The notes under the pieces were generated by a model. That model was not told where the DNA came from. It did not search any database and saw nothing but the letters and a program-made list of their open reading frames with translations. Source: Rebecca billardiae RCC1528 (lineage: Eukaryota; Protista; Haptophyta). From it: a DNA stretch of 64,000 nt. The DNA is taken from positions 372,001-436,000 of the forward strand of contig OZ251234.1 in the NCBI GenBank assembly GCA_965240325.2, written 5' to 3'. A program made the position numbers and the translations under genes. This document shows, in pieces, positions 14,569 to 62,587 of this stretch. Numbering within the stretch: position 1 is the first letter of the stretch; each line of letters starts with the position of its first letter.

Positions 14569-14610
<42 letters not shown>

Positions 14611-14935: not shown

Positions 14936-14976
<41 letters not shown>

Positions 14977-15216: not shown

Positions 15217-15247
<31 letters not shown>

Positions 15248-16131: not shown

Positions 16132-16164
<33 letters not shown>

Positions 16165-18189: not shown

Positions 18190-18255
<66 letters not shown>

Positions 18256-21200: not shown

Positions 21201-24200
21201 CCGCCCATCCCTCCGCCCGCGCCGCCGAGCCCGCCAAGCCCGCCGTCGGCGCCGCCGCCGCCCAGGCCGCCGCCGCCGCCGCACTGCGACGGCAGCGAGC
21301 AGCTCACCGAGGGCCTGATCGCCTCGTTCAACCTGCAGAGCGGCGCGCCCGGCTTCAAGGTCGCCGGCAGCGACACGGAGTCGGCCGCCTCGTTCGCCTA
21401 CTTTGTGACCCACGCCGCGCCGGCGTCGGGCAAGGTCGAGGGCACCGTGCAGGGCTTCTCGTACCTGCGCTCGCGCCGGAGCTATGCGACGACCGTCGCG
21501 CCCGCCGCGGAGGTGGTGCCCGTGCTGCGCACCTCGACGGTGTACGCGGACCGCAGCAGCGTGCGCGTCGCGTACCAGGTGCGCGACGCGCAGGGCCGCA
21601 CGTCCGTCGACTCGAGCAACCTGAACGCTCGGCTCTGGCTGCGCAAGGTGGGCTCGACGCAATCGAGCTACACGAGCTGCGGCGGCGCGAGCGGCGCCGG
21701 CAGCATCGGCGAGTGCACCGTCAGCCTCGACGCGTCGTGGTTCGGCGGGGCGGACGCCGAGGCGACGGTGGACGTCGCGATCCGCTACGGCTCGCTCACG
21801 GTCGCGATGCGCTCGGCGGGCACGCTCACGCTGCGCGGCTCGCCCGCGCACGGCGAGCTCAGCTCGGCGGGCATGCTCGCGACGCTCGAGAGCGCGCCGG
21901 TCTTCCCGGGCGACTCGTTCGACGTGGTGCTCAGCGCGCACACCGGCGGCTTCGCGCTCAAGGCGTGGGAGATCGCGCTGAGCTACGACAGCGCCTCGCT
22001 CAGCTACGAGGGCGCGACCGGCTCGGGGCTGTACGACGCAAACCCGCAGGGCTCGGACGGCGAGCTCACCGTGAACGTGCCGGGCACGGACACGGCGGAC
22101 GCGCTCGTCACCGGCGGCGCGGTGCACCTGCTCACGCTCACCTTCGGCGTGCGCGCCGGCGTCACCGCCGGCGCGACGCTGAGCGACGTGCTCTCGTTCA
22201 CCGCCGTCGCGATGATCAACGCGGGCAACGTCCAGTTCCTCTCGAACGCGGCCGGCCAGGTGGCCGACCACCGGGACGGGCTGCACGCGTCGGGCGAGGT
22301 CGTCGTCGACGCGGTGCGCGTGGTGGGCGCGCACGCGTACACGGACATCGTCGAGGTGGTGAACACCGCGCCGCTCACGGGCTCCGCGCTCAGCGCGCAG
22401 CTCACCGTGCTCGAGCACTACTCGCGCGCCGCGACCGGCTCGAGCGTGCAGACGAGCGCGTACACGTGCGGCGTCGCGGACGCCAACGCGACGGCCGTGC
22501 TCGAGGTAAACGCCGCGACGTGCGAGCTCACGCTCGGCCCGGAGCACACGGCGGGTGCCGCGCGCGTGAGCATCACCGCCGCCTCCGCCGCCGACCCGGC
22601 CATCAACGCCACCACGCCGATGCGCGTGTGGTACCCGCTGAGCACGTCGCTCGGCGTGTCCGACGCGCGGCTGCAGCAGGTCGAGCTGCTGCAGGCCGCG
22701 GGCGCGTGCGGCTCGCCCGGCTTCCAGAGCGCCGACCTGCTGCTCACCGCCACGTTCGGCGGCGCCGGGCTGGAGACGAGCGCGCCGCTCGACGTGTCCG
22801 CGCTCGCCGCGTTCGAGACGAGCGACTCCTCCGTCGTCCAGGTCGACGGCTCCGTCGTGACGGGCAAGACGGTGGGCAGCGCGACGATCGGCGTCGGCAA
22901 CGGCGCCGCCGTCGCCGACACGGTCGACGTGCTGGTCGACGCGCAGCTGGTGAACGTGACGATCAGCGCGGTGGTCGCGTCGTCGATCTCGTTCACCTCG
23001 TCGCCGCCCTCCACGATCCCCGTCGCGAGCGCCGCGGCGGCAAGCTTCGACGTCGCCGCCTCGGCCGTGCAGGAGCTGAAGCTCGAGGGCGACCGCGCGG
23101 GCGTGTACGCCTGGGGCGCGTTTGGCGACGGCACGGTGCGCGCGATCAAGCCGTCGGAGATGCTCGTGCTCTCGCGCTCGGACGGGATCGAGCTGATCGA
23201 GGGCGACGCCTCGACGCCGTGGAAGATCGAGGTCGCGACCGGCGCCTTCGCCGAGTGCGGCCTGCTCGTGCAGGCCGAGTGGTACGTGTGCGACACCGTG
23301 GTCGCCAACGGGTACGCGACCGTGTTCCTCGACCTGCCCAAGGCGGGCGCGCTGCTCGTCTCGGCGGACGAGGAGCGCGTGACGACGCCGGACGACCCGG
23401 TGGCGCAGTACCCCGTGTCGGTGGCGACGTCGAGCGAGGTCGTCGTCAAGGTCGAGTTCGAGACGGGCGCCGTCGTCGACTTCTCCGACGACCCGCGCGT
23501 GACGGTGCGCGTCGCCGCGTCCTCGCAGGCGTGCGCGTTCATGTCGAGCTCGACCAAGTTCAGCATGCGCACCAACTCGACGTGCTCCGAGGTGGAGGTG
23601 CACGTGCAGCTCTCGGCGTACGCGCTGGGCGCGACGCTCTTCGTGCCCGTCGTCTACCTCGAGCGCCTGTACGTCACCGCCTCGCCGTACCCGGCGTACT
23701 CGGGCTCGACGGGCGTCGTGAAGAGCACGCTGCACAAGATCGACTGCACCGACCACTTCCAGCACGCGAGCGCGGTCGCGATCGCGCGGCTGACCGACGG
23801 CGACGAGGTGCCCGTGACGGTCGCCGCGGCGTTCGGCTCGACGAACAGCTCGGTCGTGCGCGTCGAGGGCACGCGGCTGCGCGGCGAGAACGCGGGCAGC
23901 GCGGTGATCACGAGCGTGTGGGCGGCGACGCGCTCCGAGCCGTACCCGATGCTCGTCTCGATGGTGCCGGTCGTCGTGAGCGGCCTGCAGCTTCGCTTCA
24001 ACGGGCTGGCGCAGAACACGCTGGTCGGGCCGGTGGGCACGGAGCGGAGCAGCCGCGTGCGCGTCGACTTCGACGACGGCACCGTCTTCACCAACTTCTT
24101 CTCGCAGGTCGACTGGATCCCGACCTCGGAGCTGCTGCTCTTCTCGAGCGGCGCGACGAGCGCCGTCACCGTCTCGGCCGAGGGCGTGATGCGCCTGCTC

Positions 24201-25676
24201 GGCAACCACCCCGAGCTGGTGGTGATGACGGTGACGTCGGCGTGCGACGCGGCGACGCTGGACACGAACAGCCTCGCGGCCAACCTCGCCGCCGAGGACG
24301 GCGACGTCGACCTCGGCAGCCGGTACGGCCTGCAGTTCGAGCAGGACGGCGACACGCTCAAGGTGGAGGTGCGCGTGCACGCGGACGGCCAGCTCAAGAA
24401 CTTCCAGATCAACCTCGAGATCGACCCGTCGGTGTTCGTCGCGAGCGCGTGCGACCAGGGCGCCGACTGGAGCGGGCTGTGGTCGTGCACGCGCAACGAC
24501 CCGGTCGACGTCGTCACCATCGTGGGCAACAACGCCGACTCGACCAAGTCGGGCGACAACCTCGAGGTGGCGGTCGTCTACTTCACGGTGCAGTCGTCCG
24601 CGCAGTCGACGATCGGCGGCTCGATCCTCGAGCTGATCCAGTACGTGGGCGGCGTGGAGCAGCGCACGGTGGGCGGCACCGTCTTCGCGGGCGAGGGCGT
24701 CGCCGCCGTGAGCACGAGCCGCCGCCGCCGCCTCGCGGCCGTGCAGCGCCAGTCGGCGCAGCGGCTCGCCGCCGCGCGCGCCGCGCAGCCGCCGCGCCGC
24801 CGGCTGCAGTCGTCGATCACGACCGCGGACATCCAGTACCTCGTGTACGAGGAGTGGAACCTGGACGGCGACTGCGCGTCCAAGTGCGCCGTGCTGGGCG
24901 ACCTCAACGGCGACTGCTCCTTCTCGTCGTACGACGTCTTCGCCGGCTCGATCGTGCTCAGCGGCATCTCGCTCGGCGCGGTCACGTTCAGCGACCTGTG
25001 CCCGGCCATCCAGAGCCGGCTCGACCCCAACCTCGACTCTGCGTTCGGCCTCGCCGACATCCGGTACCTGCTGCTCACGGTCGGGCGCAAGCTGCACTTC
25101 GTGGTGGACGTGAGCGCGGACGCGTCCGACATGATCGCGGGCACGACGGGCGACCTCGTCTTCGCCGTCGCGCTGCGCAACTACGCGGGCGCGCCCGTGT
25201 CGACGCAGGCGGGCGTGCGCGCCGAGATCGCCTACCCCAAGAAGGACGGCGAGCCTGTGTACGCGCTGGGCGCGGGCGACGGGCGCACGCCGGCGAACAA
25301 CTGGCTGGCCGAGCTCGCGCTCTTCAACGCGTCGGCCGGCGTGTACGCGGTGCACGTGCACGCCGCGCCGTACTGGGTGTCCAGCCGCACGTTCGGCATC
25401 GCGTTCATGCTCGAGACGGTCGACGGCTCGGGCGGCACGGAGAGCGAGCGCAACCTCGCCTTCTTCGGCAGCAGCGCGTCGCCGTACGCGGAGCAGGGCT
25501 CGTCGTTCTCGCCGTTCACCACGGTGACGGTGGGCGGGCCGACGAACATCGCGCTGCCGCCGAGCCCGCCGCCGCCCACGCCGCCTCTGTCGCCGCCGCC
25601 GCCCTCCACGCCGCCGCCGCCGCCTCAGTCGCCGCCGCCCTCGCCGCCGCCGCCGCCGTCGCAGCCGCCGCCGCTC

Positions 25677-25709
<33 letters not shown>

Positions 25710-25755
25710 AGCCCGTCGCCGCCGTCGCCACCCAGCCCGCCGCCGCCGCCGCCCT

Positions 25756-25787
<32 letters not shown>

Positions 25788-28700
25788 ACGCCGCCGCGCC
25801 CGCCCACGCCGCCGCCGCCGCCGACCCCGCCGCTCACGTGCGTGCTGGGTGACGTGCTCGTGCAGGGCGTGCGCGCCGAGTTGAGCGCAGCCGCGACCGG
25901 CCCGGGCTTTGCGCTCGACGGCACCTACTCGTCGACCTCGCCGACGTTCACGCGGGACTTTGGGTTCTTCTACGCGTACCCGCCGCAGACGAGCGGCGCC
26001 ATCGCGGCGACGATCCAGGGCTACTCGTACCTGCGCCGCTCGCGCAGCTTCTCGATGGCGCGCAGCGAGGTGGCGAGCGTGAGCGCCGTCGTGCGCACGG
26101 CGACGCTCTACTCGGGCCGCAACAAGGTGCGCGTCGCGTACCAGGTGCGCGATGAGGCGGGCCGCACGGACGTGGAGACGGGCGGGCTGACGGTGCAGCT
26201 CGCGCTCGCGCACTCGAGCGGCTCGCCGACGAGCACCACGTCGTGCTCGTCGCCGTCGACGGGCGGCATCGGCCTGTGCTCGGTGACGCTGAACAGCGGA
26301 TGGTTCTCGACGAGCGCGGGCTCTGCCACGGTGACGGTGACGGCCAAGTACGGCAGCACGGTCGCCGCGACGCACGCCGTGGGCTCCGTCGCGCTGGCGG
26401 CGTCGCCGGCGCACGGCACGCTCTCGTCGGCGGGCATGCTCGCCACGATGGCGACGGCGCCGCTGTACCCGACCGACTCGTTCGAGGTGAGCTTCCGCGC
26501 GCACACGGGCGCGTTTGCGCTCAAGTCGTGGTCGGTGCTGCTGCAGTACGACGCCTCCGTGCTGCAGTACGGCGGCGCGACGGGCAGCGCGCTGTACGCC
26601 GCGCCCACCGTGAGCCACAACGAGGCGGAGGGCCTCCTCGACGTGACGGCGCTCGACACCGCGGGCGGCGTCTCCAACGCGGCCGTGACGGGCAGCGCGG
26701 TGCACGTGCTCACGCTCACGTTCAGCGTGCGCGCCACCGCGCTCACCAACACGACGCACGCCGGCGTGCTCTCCTTCGTCGTCTCGTCGATGATCAACGC
26801 GGGCAACATCGAGTACGCCGCCGACGTGGCTGGCGACGTGGCCGACGACCGCGACGGCCTGCAGACCTCGGGCCGCGTGTTCGTCGAGGCGGTCGCGGCG
26901 GTGGGCGCGCACGCGTACACGGACGTGGCCGAGGTGGTGAACACCGCGCCGCTCACTGGCGACGCGATCAGCGCGCAGGTGACCGTGCTCGAGCACTACA
27001 ACCGCGACTCCGTCTCGTCGAGCGAGGAGACGTCGGGCTACCGCTGCTCGACCACCGACACCGCCGTGCTCTCCGTCAGCTCGTCGAGCTGCGCGGTGAC
27101 GATCACGGGCGCTCACACCGGCGGCGCGGCCTCGGCGACGATCACCGTCGCGTCCGTGGACGGCGCCGTGGGCGCGCAGACGCCGATGCGCGTGTGGTAC
27201 CCGCTGAGCGCGACGATGAGCGTGTCGGACGACGAGCTGCAGCGCGTCGAGCTGCTGTCGAACACGGCGTCGTGCGGCTCGCCCGGCTACCAGAGCGCCG
27301 AGGTGAGCGTCGTCGCCGACTTTGGCGGCGCGTTGCTCACGACGGTGAGCGGCGTCGACGTGAGCGCGCTGGTGACGCTCGCCTCGTCCGACGCGGCCGT
27401 GCTCAGCGTGTCCGGCTCGACGATGACCGGCCTCGCCGACGGCGTGGCGAACGTGACGCTGGGTGGCGGCGCGACGCTCGGGCTCTACGAGGCCGTGGGC
27501 GTGAGCGACGAGTACGTCAGCGTCAACCTGACCGCCGTGGTCGTGTCCAAGCTCGCGTGGTCGCCGCAGCCGCCGGGCAGCGTCGACGCCGCGCACGGCG
27601 AGACGGTCACGGCGGGCGCGGAGCTCGCGCAGGAGCTCGAGCTCGAGGGTGACACGGCGGGCATCTACGCGTGGGCGACGTTCAGCGACGGCGCGACGTA
27701 CGCCGTGCCGCAGGCGCAGCTCTCGCTCGCCGCCGAGTCGAACAACCTCTTCCTCTCCACGCCGAGCAGCTCGGCGCCCTGGCGGCTCACCGTCGCGGAC
27801 GGCGCGCGCCGCGACTGCGGCGCGCTCGTGCGTGTCGAGTGGAACGTGTGCGGCGCGATGGTGGCGCTGGACTACCCGGAGGTGACGCTCAACCTGCCGG
27901 GCGCCACGTCCATGACCATCAAGCCCGCGCGCTCGCGGCTCACCTCGCCCGACGACGACGCGCGCATGGTGCCCGTCTCGATCGCCACGTGGAGCGCTCT
28001 CTCGGTCGACGTCGAGTACGAGACGGGCGACGTGGTCGACCTCACGGGCGACGCGCGGATCCGGCTGCGCGTGGCGGACGCGTCGGCGGGCTGCGCGGAG
28101 ATGACGAGCTCGTTCACCGTCGCCATCAAGGCGGGCGCGGCGTGCACCTCGATCGAGCTCGAGGGCAGCGCCATCGGCCTGGGCGTGTCCACGAGCGTCG
28201 TGATCCCTGTCGTGTACGTGCAGCACGCGTACCTGGGGCTCTCGCCCTACCCCACCTACTCGGGCTCGTCGAGCGTGGTGACGACGACGCTGCGCAAGAT
28301 CGACTGCACGGACTTCTACCAGCACGCGATCGCGATCGCGACCGTCGTCCTCACCGACGCGTCCGAGGTGCAGGTGACCGGGCAGAGCGCCTTCTCGTCG
28401 TCCGACTCGGCGCTCGTGAACGTCGACGAGCGCGAGATCGAGGGTCTCGCCGTGGGTGCGGTCAACATCACCGCGCTGTGGGCGTCGACGACGAGCCGGC
28501 CGTACGCGCTGTCGGTGTCGGACGACCCGGTGCTCGTCACCACCCTGCGCCTCAGCTTCGCCGGCCTCTCCGCCTCCACGCTCGTCGGGCCGGTCGGCAC
28601 GGAGCGCGCGACGCGCGTGCGCGTCGTGTTCGACGACGGCACCGAGTTCAGCAACTTCTTCACCAAGGTGGACTGGATCGTGCCGACGTCGGCGCTGCTC

Positions 28701-31700
28701 ACCTTCTCGAGCGACGCGCCGACGGCGGTCGGCGTCTCCACGGACGGCGTGCTCGCGCTGTACAACAACCACCCGACGCTCGTCTCGATCGCCGTCTTCA
28801 ACGCGTGCAACGCGGCCGTCTCGGACAGCAGCTCGCTCGCGGCCAACCTCGCCGCCGAGGAGCGCGACGTCGACCTCGGCCACCGCTTCGGGCTGCAGTT
28901 CGACCAGTTCGGGGACACGGTCGAGGTGAACGTGCGCATCAACGCCAACGGCGACCTCAAGAACTTCCAGCTCGACATCAAGTTCGACGACTCGGTCCTT
29001 CGCGCGAGCGAGTGCGACCAGGGCGCCGAGTGGCAGGGCCTGTGGTCGTGCACGCTCAACGACCCGACCGACACGGTCACGGTCGTGGGCAACGACGCCG
29101 AGTCGACGGTGTCGGGCGACGACGTGGAGGTGGCGATCATCTACCTCACCGTGCAGTCCACCGCGCTCACGCAGATCCGCGGCACCGTCGTCGAGCTCAT
29201 CCAGTACGTGGGCGACACCGAGGAGCGCATCACGGGCGAGGAGATCTTTGCGGGCAAGGGCAACGTGCAGGTCACGTTCAGCCGGCGCCGCGCGCTCGCC
29301 GAGGTGCAGGAGCGCGCGCGCCACCGGCGCGCAGCACGCATCGCGGCGGCGCCGCCACGCCGGCGCCTGCAGTCCTCCTTCTCCACCGCCGAGATCGTCG
29401 ACCTGGTGTACGAGGAGTGGAACATGGACGGCGACTGCGCGTCCAAGTGTGCCGTGCTCGGCGACCTGGACGGCGACTGCGTCTTCTCGTCGTACGACGT
29501 GTTCGCGGGCTCGATCGTGCTGAGCGGCATCTCGCTCGGCGTGGTGACGTTCGGCGACCTGTGCCCGACGATCCAGAGCCGGCTCAACCCGAACCTGGAC
29601 AGCGACTTTGGGCTGACCGACATCCGGTACCTGCTGCTCACGGTCGGGCGCAAGCTGCACTTTGTGACGGACGTGTCGTTCGACGCGAGCCGGATGTTCG
29701 CGGGGACGCAGAACGACCTTGCGGTCGCCGTGACGCTGCGCAACTACGCGGGCGAGCCAGTCTCGACGCAGACGGGCATGCGCGCGGAGATCGCGTACCT
29801 GGCGTCTGAGGGCACGCCCGAGTACAACATCGGCTCGTCGGACGGCACGTCGCCGGCTGGGTACTGGCTGTCCAACCTGGCGCTGACGAACGCTTCGGCG
29901 GGCGTGTACTCGGTGCACGTGCACCCGGACTCGTTCTGGCTGGCCAGCCGCGCCTTTGGCATTGCGGTCATGCTCGAGACCGTCGACGCCTCTGGCGGGA
30001 GCACGTCGGACCGCAACATCGCCTTCTTTGGCAGCAGCGCGTCGCCGTACTCGGAGCAGGGCTCGTCGTTCTCGCCGTACGGCAGCGTCAGCGTGGTTGG
30101 CAGCCTGCCGCCGTCCAGCCCTCCGACGCCGCCGCCGCCGAGCCCGCCATCGGAGCCGCCATCTTCGCCGCCTGGCGCGCCGCCCCCTCCGCCGCCATCG
30201 CCGCCGCCAAGCCCGCCGCCGTCGCGGCCACCGCCTCCACCGCCATCGCCCCCGCCGAGCCCACCTCCGTCGCCACCTCCGCCACCGCCACCAAGCCCGC
30301 CACCGAGCCCGCCGCCATCGCCGCCGCCGCCGCCGCCGCCGACGCCCCCTCCGCCCAGTCCGCCGCCGCCGCCACCGCCAGCACCGCCGCCGCCGCCGCC
30401 GCCGACGCCCCCACCGCCAGGGAGTCCGCCGAGCCCGCCGCCTTCGCCGCCGCCACCGCCTCCGACCCCTCCACCGCCCTCGCCCACTCCACCCTCGCTG
30501 CCGCCTCCACGACCCGCCCCTCCGCCATCGCAGCCGCCATCGTCACCGCCGGGCGCGCCCAGCTCACCGCCGCCGCTGTCGCCGCCGCCGGCGCCTCCTC
30601 GCCAGTGCGAGTATTCCGCGGACGACCTCGTGGCGGGCGCCTCCGCCGTGTTCGAGGCGAGCGCGTCGGGCCCGGGCTTTGCGCTCGACGGCACGTACTC
30701 GTCGACCAACCCGACCTTCTCGGAGGACTTTGGCTTCTTCTACGCGTACCCGCCGCAGACGAGCGGCCGCGTGACCGCGTCGATCCAGGGCTACTCGTAC
30801 CTCGAGCGCTCGCGCTCGTTCAAGATGAGCCGCAGCGAGGTGGCGAGCGTCAGTGCCGTCGTGCGCACGACGACGCTGCACGAGGGCGAGAACCGCAACC
30901 TGCTCCGCGTCGCGTACCAGGTGCGCGACGATGCGGGCCGCACGGACGTGGAGACGAGCGGGCTGACGGTGCAGGTGGAGCTTGCGCACTCGGCAGGCTC
31001 GCCGACAAGCACCACTTCGTGCTCGTCGCCGTCGACGGGCGGCATCGGCCTGTGCTCGGTGACGCTGAACAGCGGATGGTTCTCGACGAGCGCGGGCTCT
31101 GCCACGGTGACGGTGACGGCCAAGTACGGCAGCACGGTCGCCGCGACGCACGCCGTGGGCTCCGTCGCGCTGGCGGCGTCGCCGACGCACGGCACGCTCT
31201 CGTCGGCGGGCATGCTCGCCACGATGGTCTCGTCGCCGCAGTACCCGACCGACTCGTTCGACGTGGTGATCACCGCGCACGCGGGCGCCTTTGCGCTCAA
31301 GTCGTGGGAGCTCTTCCTGCAGTACGACACGTCTGTGCTCGAGTACCGCCAGCACACGGGCGGCTCGGACTACGCGACGCCGACGGTGAGTATCAGCACG
31401 GCGAACGGCGAGCTGAGCGCGTCGGCCCTCGACATCGTCACGACTGAGGGCGACGTGTCGGGCACGGACGTGTGGGTGCTCACCGTCCAGTTCCGTGTCG
31501 TGGGCTCTGCTGCCACGGGCGTGACGCATCCGGACGTGCTGTCGTTCAACGTGGTGTCGATGATCAACGCGGGGACGGTCGAGTACCTGGCTGACACTGC
31601 GGGCTTCGTGGCCGACGACCGTGACGGCCTGCAGTCGTCGGGCCATCTCGCCGTCGAGGCGGTCCTCGCGGTGGGCGCGCACGCGTACACGGACATCGTC

Positions 31701-52700: not shown

Positions 52701-55700
52701 GGCTCGACGGGCAACCTCGCCTTGGCCATCACGCTGCGCAACTACGCGGGCGAGGCGGTGACGACGCAGGCGGCCATGCGCGCGGAGATCAGCTACCTCG
52801 CGACGGAGGGCACTGCCGTCTACACGCTCGGCTCGTCGGACGGCACGTCGCCGGACGGGTACTGGCTCGCCAACCTCGCGCACGCTGGCAACGGCGTGTA
52901 CTCGCTGCTGGTGCACCCGCTGCCGTACTGGGTGAGCGGCCGGCTCTTCGGGATCGCGTTCATGCTCGAGACGACCGACAGCTCGGGCGGCACCGAGAGC
53001 GAGCGCAACTTCGCCTTCTTTGGCAGCAGCGCGCCGCCGTACTCGGAGACGGGCTCGTCGTTCAGCCCGTACAAGTACATTGCCGTCACCGGCCCGACCG
53101 TCCTGCTGCCGCCGCTGCCGCCGCCGTCTCCGCCGCCGCAGCCGCCACCCTCGCCGCCGCCGCGGCCGCCGCCGCCTTCCCCCCCGCCGAGCTCACCGCC
53201 GCCCTCGTCGCCGCCCGCGTCGCCGCCACCGCCGCCTCCGCCCTCGCCGCCGCCCGTGACGTGCCGCGGCGCCGCCGCGCTCGTCGAGGGTGCAACGGCC
53301 GTGTTCGAGGCGAGCGCGTCGGGCCCGGGCTTTGCGCTCGACGGCACGTACTCGTCGACCAACCCGACCTTCTCGGAGGACTTTGGCTTCTTCTACGCGT
53401 ACCCGCCGCAGACGAACGGCCGCGTGACCGCGTCAATCCAGGGCTACTCGTACCTCGAGCGCTCGCGCACCTTCAAGATGAGCCGCAGCGAGGTGGCGAG
53501 CGTGAGCGTCGTCGTGCGCACGGACACGGTGTACGAGGACCGCAACGCCGTGCGCGTCGCGTACCAGGTGCGCGACGACGCGGGCCGCACGGACGTGGAC
53601 ACCAGCGGGCTGACGGTGCAGCTCGCGCTCGCGCACTCGAGCGGCTCGCCCACGAGCACCACGTCGTGCTCGTCGCCGTCGACGGGCGGCATCGGCCTGT
53701 GCTCGGTGTCGCTGGGCAGCGAGTGGTTCTCGACGAGCGCGGGCTCGGCCACGGTGACCGTCACTGCCAAGTACGGCAGCACGGTCGCCGCGAGCGAGGC
53801 GGGCAGCGCCGTCACGCTGGCGGCCTCGCCGACGCACGGCACGCTGTCGGCGGCGGGCATGCTCGCGACGATGGTCTCCGCCCCGCAGTACCCCGGCGAC
53901 ACCGTCACCGTCGAGATCAGCGCGCACACCGGCGAGTTTGCGCTCGGCTCGTGGTTCCTGCTGGCGCAGTTCGACACGTCGGTGCTCGAGTTCGCGAGCT
54001 CGACGGGCAGCGACCTGTACGCGTCGCCGCAGGTGGTGGTGGACCTCGAGAACGGCCGGCTCACGGGGCAGGCGCTGTCGCTCAACGACGGCGTCGCTAG
54101 CGCCGAAGTGACCGGCTCGGCCGTCCCCCTGCTCACGCTCAGCTTCACGGTGCGAAGCGTCTCGGCCGGCACGTACGCCGACGCCATCTCGCTGTCCATC
54201 GACTCGATGGCCAACACCGGCGGGAACACGTACGTGCAGGACCAGGCGGGCTTCGTGGCCGACGATCGCGACGGCCTGCAGTCGTCTGGCCGCCTCGCCG
54301 TCGAGGCGGTCGCCGCGGTGGGCGCGCACGCGTACACGGACATCGTCGAGGTGGTGAACACCGCGCCGCTCACGGGCGATGCGATCAGCGCGCAGGTGAG
54401 CGTGCTCGAGCACTACAACCGCGCGTCCACGTCGTCGAGCGTGGAGACCTCGTCCTACCTGTGCAGCTCGGCGGACGACACCGTCGTCACCGCCGACTTT
54501 GGCACGTGCGCGCTCTCGCTCACGGCTTCGCACCTCGCCGGCGCTGCCTCGGTCGCCATCACCGCCTCCGGGCCGTCGGCGCTGAGCGCGCAGACGCCGA
54601 TGCGCGTGTGGTACCCGCTGAGCGCGACGATGAGCGTGTCGGACGGCGAGCTGCAGCGCGTCGACCTGCTGCAGAGCGCGTCGTCGTGCGGCTCGCCGGG
54701 CTACCAGAGCGCCGAGGTGAGCGTCGTCGCCGACTTTGGCGGCGCGTCGCTGGCGACGGTGAGCAGCGTCGACGTGAGCGCGCTGGTGACGCTCGTCTCG
54801 GGCGACAGCGGCGTGGCGACCGTCGACGGCTCGATGGTGACGGGCGTGGGCGCCGGCTCGACGAGCGTGACGCTCGGCGGCGGCGCAACGTCGCCGGCGA
54901 GCGCCAGCGTGAGCGTGAGCGACGTGGTGCTGACGGCCAACCTGACGGCGGTCGCCATCTCGACGCTCTCGTGGTCGACGACGCCGCCGACGAGTGTGCC
55001 TGCCACGCCTGCCACGTACTCGTTCACCGCGGGCGCTGAGCTGGCGCAGTCGCTGACGCAGGAGGGCGACGAGGCGGGCGTGTACGCGTGGGCGAGCTTC
55101 TCGGACGGCACGACGGCCAAGGTCTCCCCGGCGCAGCTGCAGGTCACCACGAGCTCGTCCGGCGTCGAGCTGACGTCGGGCGACTCGTCCACGCCGTGGA
55201 AGCTGGCGGTCGCGTCCGGCGCGCTGCCCGAGTGCCGCGAGATGCTCGAGGTCGAGTGGACGGTGTGCTCGGCGACGGTGGCGCGCGACACGGCGTACGT
55301 GCACCTCGACATGCCGGGCGCCGAGTCGCTCACCGCCACCTCCGTCGAGTCGCGCCTCACCTCGCCCGACGACCCCGCGCGCGTGGCGCCCGTGTCGGTC
55401 GCGACGTCGTCGGCCATCCGCGTCGAGGTGCGCTTTGAGAACGGCAACACGCAGACGATGACCGGCGACAGCCGCGTCGAGATCTCGGTGACGAGCCCGA
55501 CGTCGTGCGCGACGATGAGCGGCTCGTTCGAGGTGTCGATCACCAACGGCGCGAGCTGCGAGACCGTCGAGCTCGCCGTCTCGATCCCCACGTTTGGCGT
55601 GAGCGGCACGCTGAGCGTCCCCGTCGTGTACCTGGATCGCTTCTTCCTCACCGCCTCGCCGCACCCGACCTACTCGGGCTCGACGAGCGTGGTGAAGTCG

Positions 55701-58700
55701 ACGCTGCACAAGGTCGACTGCACGGACGCGTACCAGCACGCGCAGGCGGCGGCGACCGCGCTGCTCACCGACGCCACCTCCGTCGCGGTGACGAGCAAGG
55801 CGGCGTTCAGCTCGACCAACTCGTCGGTGGTGGACGTGGACGGCACGCGCCTGATGGGCGTGCGCCCCGGCACCGTCGGCGTCACCGCGCGCTGGGCGAG
55901 CATCGACAGCGAGATGTACGTGCTGTCGGTCTCGGACGTGCCGGTGGTCATCACGGCGCTGCAGCTCCAGTTCGCCAGCCTCGATCGCGACGACACGCTG
56001 CTCGGCGTCGCGGGCACGCAGCGCACCGTCAAGGTGCGCGTCGAGTTTGACGACGGCACCGTCTTCACCAACTTCATCACCAAGGTCGAGTCGTGGTGGA
56101 TCCCGACGTCCGACCTGCTGCTCTTCTCGAGCGGCGCGGCCTCGGCCGTCACCGTCTCGACCGAGGGCATGATGACGCTGCTCGACAACCACTTCGAGCT
56201 CGTGACGATGACGGTCACGTCGGCGTGCGACGCGGCGATGCTCGACGCAAACACGCTCGCCGCCAACCTCGCGCCCGCCGACTTCGACGTCGACCTGGGC
56301 AGCCAGTACGGCGTGCAGTTCCAGCAGGAGGGCGACACGCTCGAGGTCGCGCTGCGCATGCACTCGGACGGCGAGCTCAAGAACTTCCAGATCGATGTCG
56401 AGTTCGACGACGCGGTAGTGCTCGCGCAGTCGTACGTGCAGGGCGCCGACTGGGGCGGACAGTTCTCGTGCACGCTCAACGACCCGAGCAACAAGGTCAC
56501 GTGCATCGGCAACGACGCTGAGTCGACGGCGTCCGGCTCGGACCTCGAGCTGGCGGTCATCCAGTTCACGGCGCAGTCGACGGCGCACGTCACGTTCTCC
56601 GCGTCGATCATCGACGCGCTGCAGTTCGTGGGCGGCGTCGAGACGCGCCTCACCGACGCGACCGCTGTCGCCGGCCGCGGCGTGGCCGCGCTCACGCTCA
56701 GCCGGCTGCGCCGGCTCGCCGAGGTGCGCGCCAAGACGCAGCGCCGGACGGCCGCGCGGCGGCATGCGCGCGCGCACAACAACCGGCGCCGGCTGCAGAC
56801 CTCGTTCACCACCGAGGACATCGAGGACTTCGTGTACACAGAGTGGAGCCTCGACAGCGGCTGCGACGCCAAGTGCGACGTGCTCGGCGACCTGAACAAC
56901 GACTGCGTCTTCACGTCGTACGACGTGTTCGCCGCGTCGATCGTGTTCAGCGGCGTCGCGCTCGACGTGGTCAACCTCGGCGGCCTCTGCGCCAACATCC
57001 AGAGCCGGCTCGACCCGACGCTCGACGGCGACTTTGGCCTCTCCGACCTGACGTACCTGCTGCTCACGGTCGGGCGCAAGCGCCACTTTGTGACCAACGT
57101 GACCGTCGACTCGACCGCCGTGGTCGCAGGCACCCAGGGCAACGTCGAGCTCGCGCTCACGCTGGTGAACGCGGAGGGCGGCGCCGTCACGACGCAGGCG
57201 AGCGTGCGCTCCGAGATCAGCTACGACCAGAGCGAGGGCACCGCCCTCTTCGACGAGGGCACCGACGGCGGCACGTCGCCGGACGGCGGCTGGCTCGGCG
57301 TGCTCGATCACGTCGGCGCGGGCCGGTACTCGATGAAGGTGCACCCCGATCCGTTCTGGCTGACGGCGCGCACGTTCGGCATCGCGTTCATGCTCGAGAC
57401 GACCGACAGCTCGGGCAACTCGGACGACGACCGCAAGTACCCGTTCTTCGGCTCGAGCGTCGAGACGTACGCCGCGCAGGGCTTCACGTTCTCGCCGTTC
57501 GCCGAGCTGGCTGTCTCCGGCTTCTCCAACCTGACGCTGCCGCCGTCGCCGCCGCCGCTGCCGTCGCCGCCGCCGCCGCCGTCGTCGCCGCCACCGGACG
57601 TGCCCTCGCCGCCGCCCAAGCCGCCGCCGCGTCAGCCGCCACCGCCGAGTGCGCCGCCGCCGCCGCCGCCGGCACCGTCGCCAAGCCCGCCGCCCGCGCC
57701 GCCCGCGCAGCCGTCGCCGCCGCCGGGCCTGCCGTCGCCACCGCCGCCGCCGCCAAAGGTGTGCCCGACGACTGCGGAGCTGCTCAACGGCGCCTCCGCC
57801 ATGTTCGAGGCGAGCGCGTCGGGCCCGGGCTTCCCGCTCGACGGCACGTACTCGTCGACCAACCCGACCTTCTCGGAGGACTTTGGCTTCTTCTACGCGT
57901 ACGCGCCGCAGACGAGCGGCCGCGTGACCGCGTCGATCCAGGGCTACTCGTACCTCGAGCGCTCGCGCACGTTCACGATGAGCCGCAGCGAGGTGGCGAG
58001 CGTGAGCGTCGTCGTGCGCACGGACACGGTGTACGAGGACCGCAACGCGGTGCGCGTCGCGTACCAGGTGCGCGACGACGCGGGCCGCACGGACGTGGAC
58101 ACGAGCGGGCTGACGGTGCAGCTCGCGCTCGCGCACTCGAGCGGCTCGCCCACGAGCACCACGTCGTGCTCGTCGCCGTCGACGGGCGGCGTCGGCCTGT
58201 GCTCGGTGTCGCTGGGCAGCGAGTGGTTCTCGACGAGCGCGGGCTCGGCCACGGTGACCGTGTCGGCCAAGTACGGCAGCACGGTCGCCGCGAGCGAGAC
58301 GGGGGCCGCCATCACGCTGGACGCCTCGCCGGCGCACGGCACGCTGACGGCGGCGGGCATGCTCGCGACCACGGTCTCCTCGCCGCGCTTCCCGGGCGAC
58401 ACGTTCGACGTGAGGATCACCGCGCACACGGGCGGCTTCTCCATGCTGTTCTGGGGCATCACCGCGCAGTACGACACGTCGGTGCTCGAGTACGAGGGCG
58501 CGACCCAGAGCAGCCTGTACAACTCGCCGAGCGTCGGCGTCGACAGCGGCGCCGGCCTGATCAGCGCGTCCGTGCTCGACATCGCGGGCGGTGTGGACGA
58601 GGCGGACGTGCTGGGCACGGCCGTGCACGTGATCACGCTGAGCTTCCGCGTGGCCTCGGGCGCGCCGACCGGCGCGGTGCACGCCGACGTGCTCGCGCTC

Positions 58701-61700
58701 ACCGTGGACAACATGAACAACCAGGACCGCTCGTACGTGACCAACCAGGTTGGCTCGCTGCTCGACGACCGCGACGGGCTGCAGACGTCCGCGCGCCTGG
58801 CCGTGGAGGCGGAGGCGGTGGTGGGCGCGCACGCGTACACGGACGTGGCCGAGGTGGTGAACACCGCGCCGCTCACGGGCGACGCGCTCAGCGCGCAGGT
58901 CAGCGTGCTCGAGCACTACAACCGCGCGTCCACCTCGTCGGGCGAGGCGGCCACCTCCTCGTACACGTGCGCCACTGTCGCCAGCGCCGTGCTCTCGGTC
59001 GGCGCGTCGAGCTGCGCCGTGACGATCTCGGCCGCGCACAGCGCGGGCTCGGCGTCCGCCAGCATCGACGTCACCTCGGTGGACACCGCCGTGGTCGCGC
59101 AGACGCCGATGCGCGTGTGGTACCCGCTGAGCGCGACGATGAGCGTGTCGGACGCCGCTCTGGAGCGCGTCGACCTGCTGCAGAGCGCGTCGTCGTGCGG
59201 CTCGCCGGGCTACCAGAGCGCCGAGGTGAGCGTCGTCGCCGACTTTGGCGGCGCGTCGCTCACGACGGTGAGCGGCGTCGACGTGAGTTCGCTGGTGACG
59301 CTCGTCTCGGGCGACAGCGGCGTGGCGACCGTCGACGGCTCGATGGTGACGGGCGTGGGCGCCGGCTCGACGAGCGTGTCGCTCGGCGGCGGCGCGACGT
59401 CGCCGGCGAGCGTGGGCGTGAGCGTGAGCGACGTGGTGCTGACGGCCAACCTGACCGTCGTCGCCATCTCGACGCTCTCGTGGTCGACGACGCCGCCGTC
59501 CACGGTCTCGGCCGCGCACGGCACCACGTTCACCGCGGCCGCGGACGTGGCGCAGGTGCTCGAGCTCGAGGGCGACGAGGCGGGCGTGTACGGCTGGGCG
59601 AGCTTCTCGGACGGCACGACCGCGCGGGTGCCCGCGACGCAGCTGCAGCTCACGTCGCTCACGTCCGGCATCGAGCTGACGTCGGGCGACGCGTCGACGC
59701 CGTGGAAGATGGCGGTCGCCACCGGCGCCGCCTTCGAGTGCGGCGACCTGCTCTCCGCGTCGTGGAGCGTGTGCGGCGTCGTGGTGGCCGAGGACCTGGT
59801 GCCCGTGCTGCTCGACCGGCCGGGCGCGAGCGGCCTCAGCCTCGCGTCGTCGCGCTCGCGGCTCACCTCGCCGAGCGACCCCGCGGCCGCGACGCCGGTG
59901 TCCGTCTCGACGAGCGCGGAGATCACCGTGCTCGTCCAGTTCGAGACCGGCGACTCGCAGGACTTCAGCTCGGACGAGCGCGTGACGGTGGAGGTGCTCA
60001 ACCCGCTGTGCGCGACGCTCGAGTCGGGCACGGCCAAGCCGACCGTGCGCGTCAAGTTCACGCTCGACGTGGCCGCGTGCACGAGCGTGGAGGTGCGCGT
60101 CGCCGTGCCGTCGCTCGCGGTCTCGGAGACGCTCTCCGTGCCCATCGTGTACCTCGACGAGCTGTACGTCGGCGTCTCGCCGTACCCGGCGTACTCGAGC
60201 CCGGACTCGTCGACGTACGTGGTGAGCAGTCTGAACAAGATCGAGTGCACCGGCTACTACCAGCACGGCAAGGCGAGCGCGACCGCGCGGCTCACGGACG
60301 GCGACGAGATCTCGGTCACGTCGTTCGCGACGTTCGCCTCGACCGACTCGGCGGTCGTCCTCGTCGAGGCGCCCACGCGGCTGCGCGGCGAGAGCGCCGG
60401 GCTCGTCGACGTCACCGCGACGTGGGCGTCGACCGTGTCGACGCCGTACGCGCTCGAGGTCTCTGACACGCTCGTGCTCGTGACCGACCTCATCCTCACC
60501 TTCCAGGGGCTCACGCGCGGCACGCTGTACGGCGAGGTGGGGCACAGCCGCTCGGTGCGCGTCAAGGTGATCTTCTCCGACGGCACGCGCTTCTCCAACT
60601 TCCTCACCGACGTCGACTGGATCCCGACGAGCGAGCTGCTCACCTTCGCCACGAGCGCGCCCGCCGCCGTCTCGATCTCGACCGAGGGCGTGATGACGCT
60701 GCTCGGCAACCACCACGAGGCGGTGGGCGTGCAGGTGAGCAAGGCGTGCGACGGCTCGCAGGAGATGACGAACGAGCTCTTCGCCAACCTCAAGCCCGCC
60801 AACGGCGACGTCGACCTCGGCCACCAGTACGGCCTGCAGTTCTCGCAGGACTCGGACGGCACGTTTGAGGTCGCTGTGCGCGTGCACGCCGACGGCCTGC
60901 TCAACAACTTCCAGATCGACGTGTACATCGACCCCGCCGTGTTCCACGTCGCGTCGGAGGACGACTGCGAGCAGGGCGCGGACTGGGGCGGCATCTTCTC
61001 CTGCACGCCCAACGACCCAACCGACGTGGTCACCGTCGTGGGCAACGACGCCGAGTCGTCCGCGACGGGCGAGGCGATCGAGGTGGCGGTGATCAAGCTC
61101 ACGCCCAAGACATCGGCGCGCTCGACCATCTCCGCGCTCATCATCGACCTGGTGCAGACGAGCAGCGGCGTGGAGCAGCGGCTGAGCAACGTCGACGTGT
61201 TCGCCGGGCTGGGCGACGCGCTCGCCGTCGTCGACCGCCGCCGCGCGCGCCAGCTCTCCGCAGCGAACGTGCTCGCCGCCGCGGACGCGCGCGCCGCGCG
61301 CCGCGCGGCCGCCGCCGCCGCCGCCGCCGCGCGCGCCGCCAACCGGCGCGCGCTGCAGACGGCCTCGTTCACGTCCGCGCAGATCGTCGAGCTGGTGTAC
61401 GAGACGTGGGACCTGGACGACGAGGCGAACGGCAACTGCGACGCCAAGTGCGACGTGCTCGGCGACCTGGACGGCGACTGCGTCTTCACGTCGTACGACG
61501 TGTTCGCGGGCTCGATGGTGTACACGGGCATCCAGCTGGGCGTGGTCACGTGGAACGACCTCTGCCTCAACGTGCGGCAGCGGCTCAACGTCAACCTGGA
61601 CACGTCCTTCTCGCTGACCGACCTGCGCTACCTGCTGCTCGTCGTCGGGCGCAAGCTGCACTTCATCACCAGTGTCGAGTCGGACGACAGCGCGTGCGTC

Positions 61701-62477
61701 GCGGGCAGCACGGGCGACCTCGCCATCGACGTCACGCTCAAGAACTACCTGGGCGAGCCCGTCACCTCGCAGACGGCGCTGCGCGCCGAGATCAGCTACG
61801 GCGCGACGCAGGGCAGCTCGCAGCTCACCACCGGCACCGCCGACGGCACCTCGCCCGACGGGTACTGGCTCGCGAGGTTTGCGCACGTCGGCGGCGGCGT
61901 CTGGTCGCTGCGCGTGCACGCCGGGCCGTACTGGCTCGACGCCGTCGCGTTCGGCGCGGCGATCATGCTCGAGACGGCCGACTCGAACGGCGGCACGGAG
62001 GATCCGAACCGGCGCGTCGCCTTCTTCGGCTCGTCCGTCTCGCCCTACTCGGACACGGGCGGCACCTTCCTGCCCGTCGCCGAGTTCGCCACGTCTGGCG
62101 CCATCATCCCCTCGCCCTCGCCGCCGCCCTTCCCTCCGCCGTACATCATCCCCGAGTACGACGAGGACGAGCTCGGCGCGATCTTCGACGAGGCGAGCGG
62201 CGTGCTCTACGTGGCGGGCAACGACCCGCTGCCCGACCGGTTCGGCAAGGTGGACATGCAGTTCTCGCCGCTCGTCTCGCGCGCGACGCGCGGCTCGAAG
62301 GTGTACTGGGCGTTCCTGCCGTCGGAGGAGGACGGCACGCTCAGCCCGGCGCGCATCGAGCAGCTCATCGACGAGCACGAGCGCTGGAGCGCGTGGACGG
62401 GCGGCAAGGACAAGTCGGTTGACATCAACGCCAAGATCACGCAGCAGGTCGAGGCCGCCCTCGCGCGCCGGCGCTGA
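2109..62477 (+). CDS. Giant (20,122 aa, ~2 MDa) secreted Pro-rich modular polyprotein with nine TMEM132-like/cohesin/Ig/dockerin super-repeats
   Basis: Single stop-free frame of 60.4 kb with strong G/C third-position bias throughout. The ORF-track start at 2076 is TTG; the first ATG is at 2109 in a good Kozak-like context (GCCAGCGATGG). TGA at 62475-62477. Coherent repeated globular modules alternate with SPPP linkers. Confidence 0.93.
2499..3089 (+). other. Module A1: Cys-bracketed discoidin/galactose-binding-like beta-sandwich. Paralogues A2 6696-7337, A3 13317-13868, A4 16380-16994
   Basis: Shared motif C..LPL.I.F...YLR..S.WW.KRP..I.L.A...D..W..E..FTF......CG.G..TFG..PC...YRL......C....L..C in four copies. 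The fold assignment is by pattern only. Confidence 0.55.
3165..3848 (+). other. Modules B1 and B2: 'D-x-W/Y-x-x-ET-x-W ... Y.F.I.D.YGDG' small beta domains. Paralogues B3/B4 9075-9645, B5 17193-17504
   Basis: Five copies, e.g. QDPWPYETEWSI...CLKPGSYTFEILDSYGDGI...SNFG. The motif is familiar from secreted proteins of marine bacteria and algae. Confidence 0.7.
3954..4352 (+). other. Module C1: PAN/Apple-like domain. Paralogue C2 7440-7830
   Basis: CERTCLCLCAAHPDCMAFEY...RCDFF and CERQCACYCARAPRCAAFDF...VCRLL match the PAN C-x3-C-x5-C-x2-F-x-Y...C pattern. Confidence 0.6.
4599..6185 (+). other. Module pair D1a and D1b: ConA/lectin-like beta-sandwiches. Paralogue pair D2a/D2b 9696-10880
   Basis: Each half begins F.D/E.F.D......W and contains GCVK/GCYR and D..GC motifs. 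The pair recurs at 9696-10880 (LFDDFTD..LWD; PG.LK..GQRK). Confidence 0.5.
6207..6560 (+). other. Module E1: unnamed Cys-rich domain. Paralogue E2 7971-8339
   Basis: C.D.C...G.CC......GQ.HSCLQGCMMIRFGE.AG..E.V..RCATCAP...C.YG.LFGQ in two copies, near-identical at DNA level in the core. Confidence 0.75.
8418..9020 (+). other. Bacterial-type lamin-tail (LTD) domain
   Basis: LFFSEY...EYVEIYN...NG...TIAPGAVLVIA...DGNDALAL...VDQIGD...WDVAGVVGATKDHVLVRR...GN..W...SEW is the signature of LTDs in secreted bacterial proteins. Confidence 0.8.
10953..11900 (+). other. Two PPC-like (pre-peptidase C-terminal-type) beta domains, G1 10953-11342 and G2 11454-11900
   Basis: CG..VSG.T.GA....HWY.....V....C...FD..LHLY.GCP......NDD..C....S.I...L..G..Y...V.G....EG.Y.....C. 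Confidence 0.65.
11901..13307 (+). repeat. Extensin/pherophorin-like (Ser-Pro3-4)n rod 1, ~470 aa
   Basis: CCG/AGC/TCG-dominated coding minisatellite encoding SPPP(P) units. Confidence 0.95.
13872..16370 (+). repeat. Extensin-like Pro-rich rod 2, ~830 aa
   Basis: Continuous SPPP/TPPP/APPP coding repeats. Confidence 0.95.
17508..17912 (+). repeat. Extensin-like Pro-rich rod (a shorter one lies at 16998-17183)
   Basis: SPPP coding repeats. Confidence 0.95.
18258..18614 (+). other. Three ShKT (ShK toxin-like) domains: 18258-18356, 18369-18467, 18504-18614
   Basis: C-x8-C-x6/8-C...C-x2-TC-x2-C pattern ending CERTCRRC, CKATCGFC and CKSTCGAC. Confidence 0.85.
18630..19364 (+). other. von Willebrand factor type D (VWD) domain with GDPH motif and C8-like Cys-rich tail
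   Basis: AVCESHGDPHFTTWTGVRYDWQG.G.Y.L...GLC...C.YDCC, with GDPH at 18651-18662. Confidence 0.85.
19365..21281 (+). repeat. Extensin-like Pro-rich rod 3, ~640 aa, separating the N-terminal modules from the super-repeat array
   Basis: SPPP/APPP/LPPP units. Internal duplication with a 504-bp offset (e.g. 20417 vs 20921). Confidence 0.95.
21285..25556 (+). repeat. Super-repeat R1. Cohesin-like 1 ~21895-22305; Ig-like series; cohesin-like 2 ~24345-24712; RRRRL..RRRLQ 24720-24809; dockerin-like 24897-25092
   Basis: One of the two most divergent copies. Carries all shared motifs (VRVAYQVRD..GR, EVVNTAPLTG, TPMRVWYP, GDLNGDC..SSYD). Confidence 0.9.
25839..30107 (+). repeat. Super-repeat R2. Processing sites 29283-29372; dockerin-like 29460-29655
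   Basis: Colinear protein similarity to R1 and R3-R9. Confidence 0.92.
30606..34883 (+). repeat. Super-repeat R3. Sites 34065-34148; dockerin-like 34236-34430
   Basis: Near-identical DNA to R4 (offset 4551). Confidence 0.95.
35157..39434 (+). repeat. Super-repeat R4. Sites 38616-38699; dockerin-like 38787-38982
   Basis: Near-identical to R3 and to most of R5 (offset 4590). Confidence 0.95.
39753..44024 (+). repeat. Super-repeat R5. Sites 43206-43289; dockerin-like 43377-43572
   Basis: Near-identical to R3/R4 except for its N-terminal ~600 bp and short patches. Confidence 0.95.
44304..48590 (+). repeat. Super-repeat R6. Sites 47763-47849; dockerin-like 47937-48132
   Basis: Colinear similarity, with a distinct cohesin-like 1. 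Confidence 0.93.
48825..53108 (+). repeat. Super-repeat R7. Sites 52272-52370; dockerin-like 52458-52653
   Basis: Colinear similarity. Dockerin loops GDIDGDCEFSSYD and DANLDGELGLTD. Confidence 0.93.
53262..57539 (+). repeat. Super-repeat R8. Sites 56703-56798; dockerin-like 56886-57080
   Basis: Colinear similarity. Dockerin loops GDLNNDCVFTSYD and DPTLDGDFGLSD. Confidence 0.93.
57762..62108 (+). repeat. Super-repeat R9. Sites 61236-61358; dockerin-like 61461-61655
   Basis: Colinear similarity, with a divergent C-terminal half. Confidence 0.92.
62142..62477 (+). other. Unique ~110-aa C-terminal domain, no TM or GPI signal
   Basis: YIIPEYDEDELGAIF...QQVEAALARRR-stop, with no hydrophobic tail. 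Confidence 0.6.
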
Positions 62478-62520
62478 TCGCTCCCGCCGCCGCATGCCAT
62501 CAAGTCCCAAGACCCCAAGG

Positions 62521-62587
62521 CACACCGCACACACTACCTTGCACGCACACACACCACTCACACGCACACACACACATACACACACAT
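62521..62587. repeat. Imperfect (CA)n tract in the presumed 3' UTR
   Basis: cacaccgcacacac...cacacacacatacacacaca starting ~45 bp after the stop. Confidence 0.8.

Follow-up and report, generated by a model that had tools for sequence, protein, structure and literature searches.

Cohesins and dockerins form some of the strongest non-covalent protein pairs known, and their partnership has been treated as a prokaryotic device. Both folds are already known, and scaffoldins that carry cohesins together with a dockerin on a single chain are usual in cellulosomes. TMEM132 and the premetazoan coherins contain a cohesin homologue that is followed by immunoglobulin (Ig) domains of the BIG type (PMC6030884), and no dockerin homologue is detectable in vertebrates (PMC6030884, Sanchez-Pulido & Ponting 2017). 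A precedent of another kind comes from diatoms: behind the signal peptide lies a short stretch with RRL at its end, called the "RXL domain", and a still unknown protease takes such domains off (PMC5525289). Here we analyse a window of 64,000 nucleotides from the haptophyte Rebecca billardiae RCC1528 (contig OZ251234.1, positions 372,001 to 436,000 of assembly GCA_965240325.2; all coordinates refer to this window), in which one giant gene encodes both folds, as recognized by sequence profiles and predicted structure. The two stand in a fixed cassette that occurs across two haptophyte classes and is attached to a TMEM132-type ectodomain.

The open reading frame (ORF) of the giant gene extends from 2076 to 62477 on the forward strand without an internal stop and comprises 20,133 amino acids (aa); its first ATG is located at position 2109 (codon 12). 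The N-terminal third of the protein is a mosaic of small domains and proline/serine-rich rods, and the C-terminal two thirds consist of nine repeat modules set apart by proline-rich spacers. Seven anchor motifs (AYQVRD, GAHAYTD, MRVWYPL, L[KN]N[FY]Q, VY[ET][ET]W, [GS]RK[LR]HF, FFGSS) occur nine times each with a period of 1,479-1,592 aa, and the units are mutually 50-98% identical in protein. Every unit is composed of a TMEM132-like ectodomain (cohesin A and Ig), a second cohesin (cohesin B), a basic linker of 32-47 aa, a dockerin of about 100 aa and an Ig-like "post" domain (Tab. 1). A preliminary description, made from the letters of this DNA alone, had proposed nine repeats, each with two cohesin-like segments, a basic spacer and a duplicated EF-hand-like motif, and all of these elements were recovered in place in 9/9 units. 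It had also seen no catalytic domain, and a Pfam search over the whole ORF finds none; glycoside hydrolases, carbohydrate-binding modules (CBM) and SLH domains are equally absent from the matches.

The cohesins are recognized by Pfam, by profile comparison and by predicted structure. Unit 2 matches the Pfam family Cohesin (PF00963; gathering cutoff 24.1 bits) in two stretches with 38.4 bits (E 1.8e-9); its cohesin B alone attains 28.2 bits (E 2.4e-6), and cohesin A of units 2 and 7 alone about 1e-4 (E 8.8e-5 for unit 7). Family-wide, matches at E <= 0.01 were obtained for 10/20 cohesin B sequences (best 3.7e-8) and 10/13 cohesin A sequences (best 6.3e-8), and single copies below the Pfam threshold, such as cohesin A of unit 1 and cohesin B of unit 9, are 50-60% identical to copies that match. 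Solved cohesins are the best PDB sequence matches of both profiles, including all six top matches of cohesin A (1g1k, E 4.7e-4), and the two profiles align with each other in hhalign with a probability of 96.5% (E 1e-9). In the AlphaFold2 (AF2) model of a 419-aa construct of unit 2, cohesin B is a nine-stranded sandwich (E18-136) whose 32 top VIA matches are all cohesins (Z 9.8-12.6, root-mean-square deviation [rmsd] 2.4-3.4 Å, 121-130 residues). They are led by the non-cellulosomal cohesins of Clostridium perfringens together with type I cohesins, and the Foldseek probability is 1.00. By its profiles cohesin A is a genuine cohesin, and cohesin B is one by profile and predicted fold.

Cohesin A is embedded in a larger arrangement. 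In unit 2 it is directly followed by Ig_TMEM132_4th (Pfam E 1.5e-12; E 2.3e-21 in the homologue P0007), and a marginal match to Ig_TMEM132_6th lies further along the unit (E 0.002-0.02); Pfam returned neither the TMEM132 conserved region nor the 5th domain in the units. The ectodomain of TMEM132 is ordered as conserved region, cohesin and three BIG/Ig domains, and the succession of cohesin A, Ig_TMEM132_4th and Ig_TMEM132_6th follows this order (PMC6030884), which is why we regard the front 1,000 aa of each unit as a TMEM132-type ectodomain. The C-terminal transmembrane helix of TMEM132 and its cytoplasmic PP1 and WIRS motifs have no counterpart in the giant protein, which ends in a soluble tail instead. 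The giant protein therefore has the ectodomain architecture in common with TMEM132 without being its orthologue. The preliminary description was right about cohesin A, but it had overlooked the ectodomain around it.

The dockerin is more divergent. No dockerin of the PDB was retrieved with a profile limited to the nine paralogous copies, and the link surfaced only once divergent homologues from 1.84 billion representatives had joined the profile, which then comprised 29 aligned sequences. With this family profile, 19/21 HMMER matches in the PDB were dockerin-bearing chains (best 4fl4_A, E 1.7e-4; range to 3e-2), the alignments to 4fl4_A and 6kg9_A run through both Ca loops and both helices, and 7/29 aligned family members match Pfam Dockerin_1 (best E 4.6e-5). 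The AF2 model of the 101-aa module has a predicted local distance difference test (pLDDT) score of 92.5 and adopts the three-helix dockerin fold. Its 29 best Foldseek matches in the PDB are all dockerins, with template modelling (TM) scores by target mostly of 0.75-0.83 (range 0.35-0.83) and an rmsd mostly of 2.1-3.3 Å. The top match among the AlphaFold database (AFDB) clusters is a haptophyte-type relative, and 15/30 listed matches are named dockerin-domain or dockerin-like, most of the others being unnamed.

Dockerins are marked by duplicated loop-helix (F-hand) segments with Ca-coordinating Asp/Asn at loop positions 1, 3, 5, 9 and 12, and all nine units show such a duplicated segment of the form D-x-[DN]-x-D...D. 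Loop 1 reads D-L-[DN]-G-D-C-x-F-S-S-Y-D and loop 2 [ND]-P-N-L-D-S-x-F-G-L-x-D, and five aspartates are invariant in the 29 sequences, namely D32, D36 and D43 (loop 1 positions 1, 5 and 12) and D77 and D84 (loop 2 positions 5 and 12). The module departs from bacterial dockerins in a Cys at loop 1 position 6 that is paired with an inter-helix Cys, both of them conserved, in an extra N-terminal helix with CxxxC, in a longer inter-repeat segment and in its length of about 100 aa versus 60-70. By profile and predicted fold, the EF-hand-like pair is a genuine but divergent dockerin of the Ca type. We hold the assignment of the cohesin and dockerin folds to be correct with very high confidence, and the calls of the preliminary description, cohesin for both segments and dockerin for the EF-hand-like pair, are borne out.

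In this family the dockerin never stands alone. A HMMER search of the 1.84 billion representatives with the dockerin module returned 21 matches, about 19 of them true; the bacterial repeat proteins P0010 and P0026 were discarded as false. The nearest relatives are hypothetical haptophyte proteins of Pavlovales sp. CCMP2436 (45% identity over a unit), Diacronema lutheri and Prymnesium parvum, and a weaker TMEM132-like relative is found in the green alga Trebouxia. Several haptophyte relatives are likewise repetitive, with two units in the partial Pavlovales protein, two dockerins in Diacronema and three near-identical units in Prymnesium. All dockerin homologues are located in cassette proteins and none in enzymes, and cohesin B, dockerin and Ig-like domain follow each other directly in every homologue with enough upstream sequence. 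Judged by this conservation, evolution has not divided the cassette in haptophytes. The homologues are named either "hypothetical" or "TMEM132 fourth domain-containing" in the databases, and a literature search on dockerin or TMEM132 in haptophytes yielded nothing relevant and no paper describing the cassette. Within Pfam names, homologue names and this literature we thus found no prior description of a eukaryotic dockerin of this type, of its constant tandem arrangement with a cohesin on the other side of an RXL linker or of the attachment of the cassette to a TMEM132-type ectodomain.

The four parts of the cassette were modelled together by AF2 for unit 2 (cohesin B, linker, dockerin and Ig; 419 aa), with a pLDDT of 88.2 and a predicted TM score (pTM) of 0.86. 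Four parts cannot reach such a pTM unless their mutual placement is confident, and the prediction for the cassette is a single compact body. The only residues inside the cassette with a pLDDT below 50 are 166-168, which lie within the RRRL/Q site at the end of the linker (the slash marks the putative cut). A shape search of the ESM Atlas found cohesins only and no analogue of the whole cassette, and a feature search of the Atlas with the post-dockerin domain gave weak Ig/invasin-like leads only. The linker is strongly basic (net charge +6 to +12) and is flanked by an acidic cohesin B (-12 to -17) and an acidic dockerin (-8 to -13). Its reading as an unrecognised intron was rejected, since it keeps the frame, occurs in homologues as well, the transcriptome-derived P0008 (MMETSP) among them, and forms a helix in the model.

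The nine units differ in the pace at which their domains diverge. Nonsynonymous divergence (dN) between units is lowest in the dockerin (0.18), intermediate in cohesin B (0.30) and highest, among the folded domains, in cohesin A (0.45); the dockerins of the nine units are 65-95% identical. Only this ranking is used, as the Nei-Gojobori (NG86) ratios of nonsynonymous to synonymous divergence (dN/dS) of 0.66-0.99 between units cannot be read as relaxed selection: with a GC content at third codon positions (GC3) of 95.7% in the giant ORF, synonymous sites are constrained and dS is meaningless. Units 3-5 (30627-44039) are 95-98% identical to each other, and the remaining pairs 50-78%. This likeness indicates that a tandem duplication or gene conversion took place within the gene not long ago, and the same region carries a risk of assembly collapse or expansion.

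Both ends of the linker are marked by sites of the R-x-L type. The spacer begins with RR(R)(A)L or RRRARQL and ends with RRRL/Q in units 1-8 and RRAL/Q in unit 9. Comparable sites (RRRL, RRL, RSL, RAL) bound the linker in most homologues, including 12/16 foreign ones, and its middle is free to vary in length and sequence across two haptophyte classes. R166 of the second site is conserved in >=90% of 23 sequences, which is comparable to the Ca ligands, and the position of this site in the sole low-confidence loop of the model fits a processing site. In the homologue P0015 (339 aa) the linker is nearly absent and an RXL site is missing where cohesin B passes into the dockerin, at about residues 200-250; either the linker ends may lie close in folded space or the gene model may have lost the linker as a false intron.

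Further RRRL sites are located outside the repeats (Tab. 1). A single segment of the protein is strongly hydrophobic, and it resembles a signal peptide or signal anchor; a Kyte-Doolittle scan of the whole protein revealed no further transmembrane-like segment and no C-terminal anchor. An RRRL follows about 50 aa downstream and RXL-type sites flank every linker, which together make up the layout of RXL-processed proteins of the diatom type. RRL occurs 18 times in the giant protein against 1.7 expected from its composition, a count in which the repeat copies are not independent events. By analogy with the diatom proteins we tentatively propose cleavage at RXL, at slightly less than even odds.

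The best overall explanation, to which we assign a probability of roughly 50%, is that of a secreted extensin-like fibre with nine modules whose cohesin B-dockerin joints form in cis and are nicked at RXL. We infer every functional step of it beyond the folds. The giant protein would be a secreted, non-enzymatic fibre of polyproline rods and nine TMEM132-type modules, each ending in a cassette. The protein contains 15.3% Pro and 12.5% Ser, and it has long Ser-Pro(3-4) repeats of the hydroxyproline-rich, extensin-like type; its 20 P/S-rich tracts add up to 3,403 aa, with a maximum of 851 aa. In each cassette, cohesin B would hold its own neighbouring dockerin, and an RXL-type endoprotease of the secretory pathway would nick the exposed RRRL/Q loop and perhaps excise the linker. 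The product would be a string of segments of about 1,500 aa that are connected by non-covalent, Ca-dependent and mechanically strong cohesin-dockerin joints. That cohesin B and the dockerin are a cognate pair is probable, and pairing in cis is favoured because of their obligate adjacency, the compact model and their co-conservation. Nicked joints could swap partners between molecules, and cohesin A could add sites; this is the sole route that we see to a network. A lattice by partner exchange or via cohesin A is possible, less likely than cis pairing, and we consider a network by trans exchange unlikely. The same low probability is given to the most far-reaching version, a "snap joint" in which a cohesin and its cognate dockerin would be made pre-docked in cis and cut at RXL, yielding megadalton fibres whose non-covalent links would be Ca-switchable, force-rated and able to swap partners, so that a network could gel.

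Several points weigh against this explanation. The dockerin copies of the window do not match Pfam Dockerin_1 (PF00404) by themselves (scanned at E 10 for three of them and at E 1 for the seven aligned ones), and Ca binding and cohesin binding by the dockerin are both predicted only. The alignment behind the AF2 models is shallow (23-29 sequences), and a canonical cohesin-dockerin interface in the compact model is read from the pTM alone. The documented cases of RXL processing come from diatoms and none from haptophytes. Finally, the linker helix is itself modelled confidently (pLDDT 83-85) and could be a permanent structural element rather than an excised peptide.

The last point leads to the rival that survives best, namely that no processing takes place and that the cassette is a permanently covalent, rigid block in a very long, adhesive, extensin-like matrix glycoprotein. 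The basic helix would pack on the acidic surfaces of cohesin and dockerin or bind acidic or sulfated polysaccharides, and the cohesins and dockerins would serve as stiff spacers or bind other ligands. The confident helix and the high pTM of the cassette agree with such a block, as do the strong charge complementarity between the linker and its neighbours, the nearly linkerless homologue P0015 and the fact that TMEM132 cohesins work without any known dockerin (PMC6030884). However, a structural helix needs no R-x-L at both of its ends while its middle varies across two haptophyte classes, the second site falls into the one disordered loop, and the giant protein has RRRL again behind its signal peptide and in linkers between other, unrelated domains. 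We regard the absence of processing as unlikely.

Another rival is the model of the preliminary description, in which cuts at RRL/RRRLQ release free subunits (dockerin, cohesin A, cohesin B) that re-dock in trans, head-to-tail and branched. The resulting lattice would be a scaffold of scales, mucilage or the cell cover, with the N-terminal piece as initiator and the 373-aa C-terminal piece as cap. Much of what it builds on stands: the folds are confirmed, there are two cohesins per dockerin in each unit, the RXL sites that bound the spacer are conserved and the second one is exposed in the model, and the protein has neither a membrane anchor nor an enzyme domain. The fragment sizes match as well, since cutting after RR[RA]L would give a first piece of 7,577 aa, eight pieces of 1,476-1,592 aa and a last one of 373 aa. 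Its premise that the partners usually lie on separate proteins is too strong, given that scaffoldins carry both modules, and free re-docking is disfavoured: no member of the family has the dockerin apart from cohesin B, the model packs the cassette into a single compact body, and trans partners would lose against a partner on a tether of 32-47 residues as long as that one is not released first. Moreover, cohesin A diverges fastest and the dockerins are nearly uniform, which is not expected of a shared cohesin A-dockerin interface, and a trans lattice is accordingly improbable compared with nicked joints in cis. Least probable is a multivalent heterotypic hub in the manner of bacterial scaffoldins, in which cohesins and dockerins would pair with other proteins (e.g. 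paralogous TMEM132/cohesin-dockerin giants or membrane receptors) and so recruit or cross-link them at the surface without self-assembly: the divergence of cohesin A between units looks as if partners differed, but the dockerins of the nine units are nearly uniform, no stand-alone dockerin-bearing protein is present among the homologues and no partner was identified.

Table 1. Coordinates of the repeat units and of other features in the window
Feature	Position	Strand	Cohesin A	Cohesin B	Linker	Dockerin	Post	Remarks
Unit 1	21285-25559	+	21846-22313	24303-24710	24711-24806	24807-25109	25092-25559	
Unit 2	25851-30122	+	26424-26891	28866-29273	29274-29369	29370-29672	29655-30122	modelled unit; Ig_TMEM132_4th after cohesin A
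Unit 3	30627-34898	+	31194-31661	33642-34049	34050-34145	34146-34448	34431-34898	
Unit 4	35178-39449	+	35745-36212	38193-38600	38601-38696	38697-38999	38982-39449	
Unit 5	39768-44039	+	40335-40802	42783-43190	43191-43286	43287-43589	43572-44039	
Unit 6	44319-48593	+	44892-45359	47340-47747	47748-47846	47847-48149	48132-48593	
Unit 7	48837-53114	+	49419-49886	51852-52259	52260-52367	52368-52670	52653-53114	
Unit 8	53274-57542	+	53841-54308	56286-56693	56694-56795	56796-57098	57081-57542	
Unit 9	57774-62120	+	58344-58811	60810-61217	61218-61358	61359-61673	61656-62120	most divergent unit; 47-aa Ala/Arg linker ending RRALQ
Strongly hydrophobic segment	2223-2285	+						aa 50-70, ARALATPIALLLLLAASLV...; only one in the protein (Kyte-Doolittle scan)
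First RRRL outside the repeats	2433-2444	+						aa 120-123; ends an Ala/Gly-rich stretch of ~50 aa after the signal-peptide-like segment
Other RRRL sites outside the repeats	2736-2747, 5163-5174	+						in acidic low-complexity interdomain linkers
Three longest (S/A)PPP extensin-like rods	11874-13316, 13845-16397, 19344-21299	+						within region 11874-21299
C-terminal tail	62121-62474	+						~118 aa, YWAFLPSEEDGTLS...INAKITQQVEAAL; kept at the C-terminus of homologue P0028 (2,999 aa)
"...SxWWxxRP..." domain	2787-2810, 7041-7064, 13560-13583, 16599-16622							4 copies
"DPWxxETxW" domain	3606-3632, 9105-9131, 9402-9428, 17223-17249							at least 4 copies
Cys-rich "CLQGCMMIRFGE" domain	6288-6323, 8046-8081							2 copies
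GDPH motif	18651-18662							aa 5526-5529
Neighbouring ORF	62982-63791	-						269 aa

The remainder of the giant protein is less well defined. The N-terminal third yields weak Pfam matches to LTD, PAN, PPC, ShK and VWD, none of them a confident family; PPC-like domains are present twice, LTD-like and PAN-like ones once each. Between the long rods there are small domains that are Cys-rich, ShK-like or VWD-like. Three further domains of this third are unnamed and recur in several copies (Tab. 1). One weak match of the VWD type (Pfam VWD E 0.046) opens with a GDPH motif. GDPH is the self-cleavage motif of the VWD domains of mucins and zonadhesin, and its presence suggests a second, unrelated cut-and-hold site. 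The C-terminal tail has no hydrophobic anchor and matched no family; it could serve in sorting or anchoring.

The window has a GC content of about 70%, rising to 85-90% across the proline tracts. Long antisense or off-frame ORFs of 1,000-4,700 aa (15861-29924, 53433-62735 and 8436-13841, all on the reverse strand, and others) are dismissed as artefacts of composition and not genes because of the GC3 value of the giant ORF. One public run that behaves like RNA covers the giant gene at a depth of 2-3.5 with three 151-nt contigs and is the only run with the gene, which is possibly weakly expressed. The neighbouring ORF downstream has no Pfam match. The same run reaches a depth of 20-50 over 62997-63700, and one of its contigs skips 165 nt (63506 to 63672), which looks like the intron of an expressed neighbouring gene.

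The cassette offers a testable candidate for what eukaryotic cohesins bind. If the pairing is true, the dockerin would be the long-missing kind of partner for the orphan cohesin of the animal TMEM132, coherin and hedgling adhesion proteins. The nicked cis joints would point to RXL-type secretory protease activity outside diatoms and possibly to a new principle, by which very large extracellular materials arise from one gene via cut-and-hold joints. The nine cohesin/dockerin pairs, orthogonal or not, are a natural set that may interest protein engineers.

Among the known systems, the diatom silaffins, cingulins and silicanin-1 (PMC5525289) share with the giant protein a signal peptide, a short stretch ending in RRL and internal RXL motifs. 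They are unrelated proteins of the stramenopile lineage, and we found no evidence of RXL activity in haptophytes. The SEA domain of mucins, the GAIN/GPS modules of adhesion G protein-coupled receptors and polycystin-1 and the furin-cut negative regulatory region (NRR) of Notch resemble the proposed mechanism only, as their folds are unrelated. In these modules a cut in the secretory pathway falls within a compact module whose chains are held together non-covalently (Ca-dependent in Notch), so that a force-sensitive joint results. The SEA and GPS cuts are autocatalytic, whereas the one proposed here would need an RXL-type protease.

The folds themselves lead to the cellulosomal and adaptor scaffoldins, such as CipA of C. 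thermocellum and ScaA/ScaB of A. cellulolyticus (PDB 1ohz, 2ccl, 4fl4, 3l8q), with which the giant protein shares the cohesin (Z up to 12.6), the dockerin (TM 0.75-0.83) and the presence of many cohesins plus a dockerin on one long, linker-rich extracellular chain. In contrast to them it has no enzymes, no CBM and no cell-wall anchoring module and does not qualify as a cellulosome. The resident dockerin of a scaffoldin is terminal and mismatches the resident cohesins, whereas in the giant protein each repeat has a dockerin behind a cohesin, with a basic and probably cleavable linker between them. Structurally, cohesin B is matched best by non-cellulosomal cohesins (Clostridium perfringens glycoside hydrolase toxin complexes, PDB 2jh2, 2vo8 and 2w1n; Archaeoglobus fulgidus, 2xdh), which likewise act as a general protein-protein connector outside cellulose degradation. 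Those pairs, however, are located on enzymes and bind in trans, and none of them has a tandem cohesin-linker-dockerin cassette or a eukaryotic host. The ectodomain of TMEM132, coherin, lefftyrin and hedgling (PMC6030884) resembles the giant protein in its cohesin directly before Ig domains, its extracellular location and its presumed adhesive role. The giant protein differs from TMEM132 in lacking the transmembrane helix and the cytoplasmic WIRS/PP1 motifs, it contains the ectodomain nine times in one chain, and every repeat has in addition an RXL linker between a further cohesin and a dockerin.

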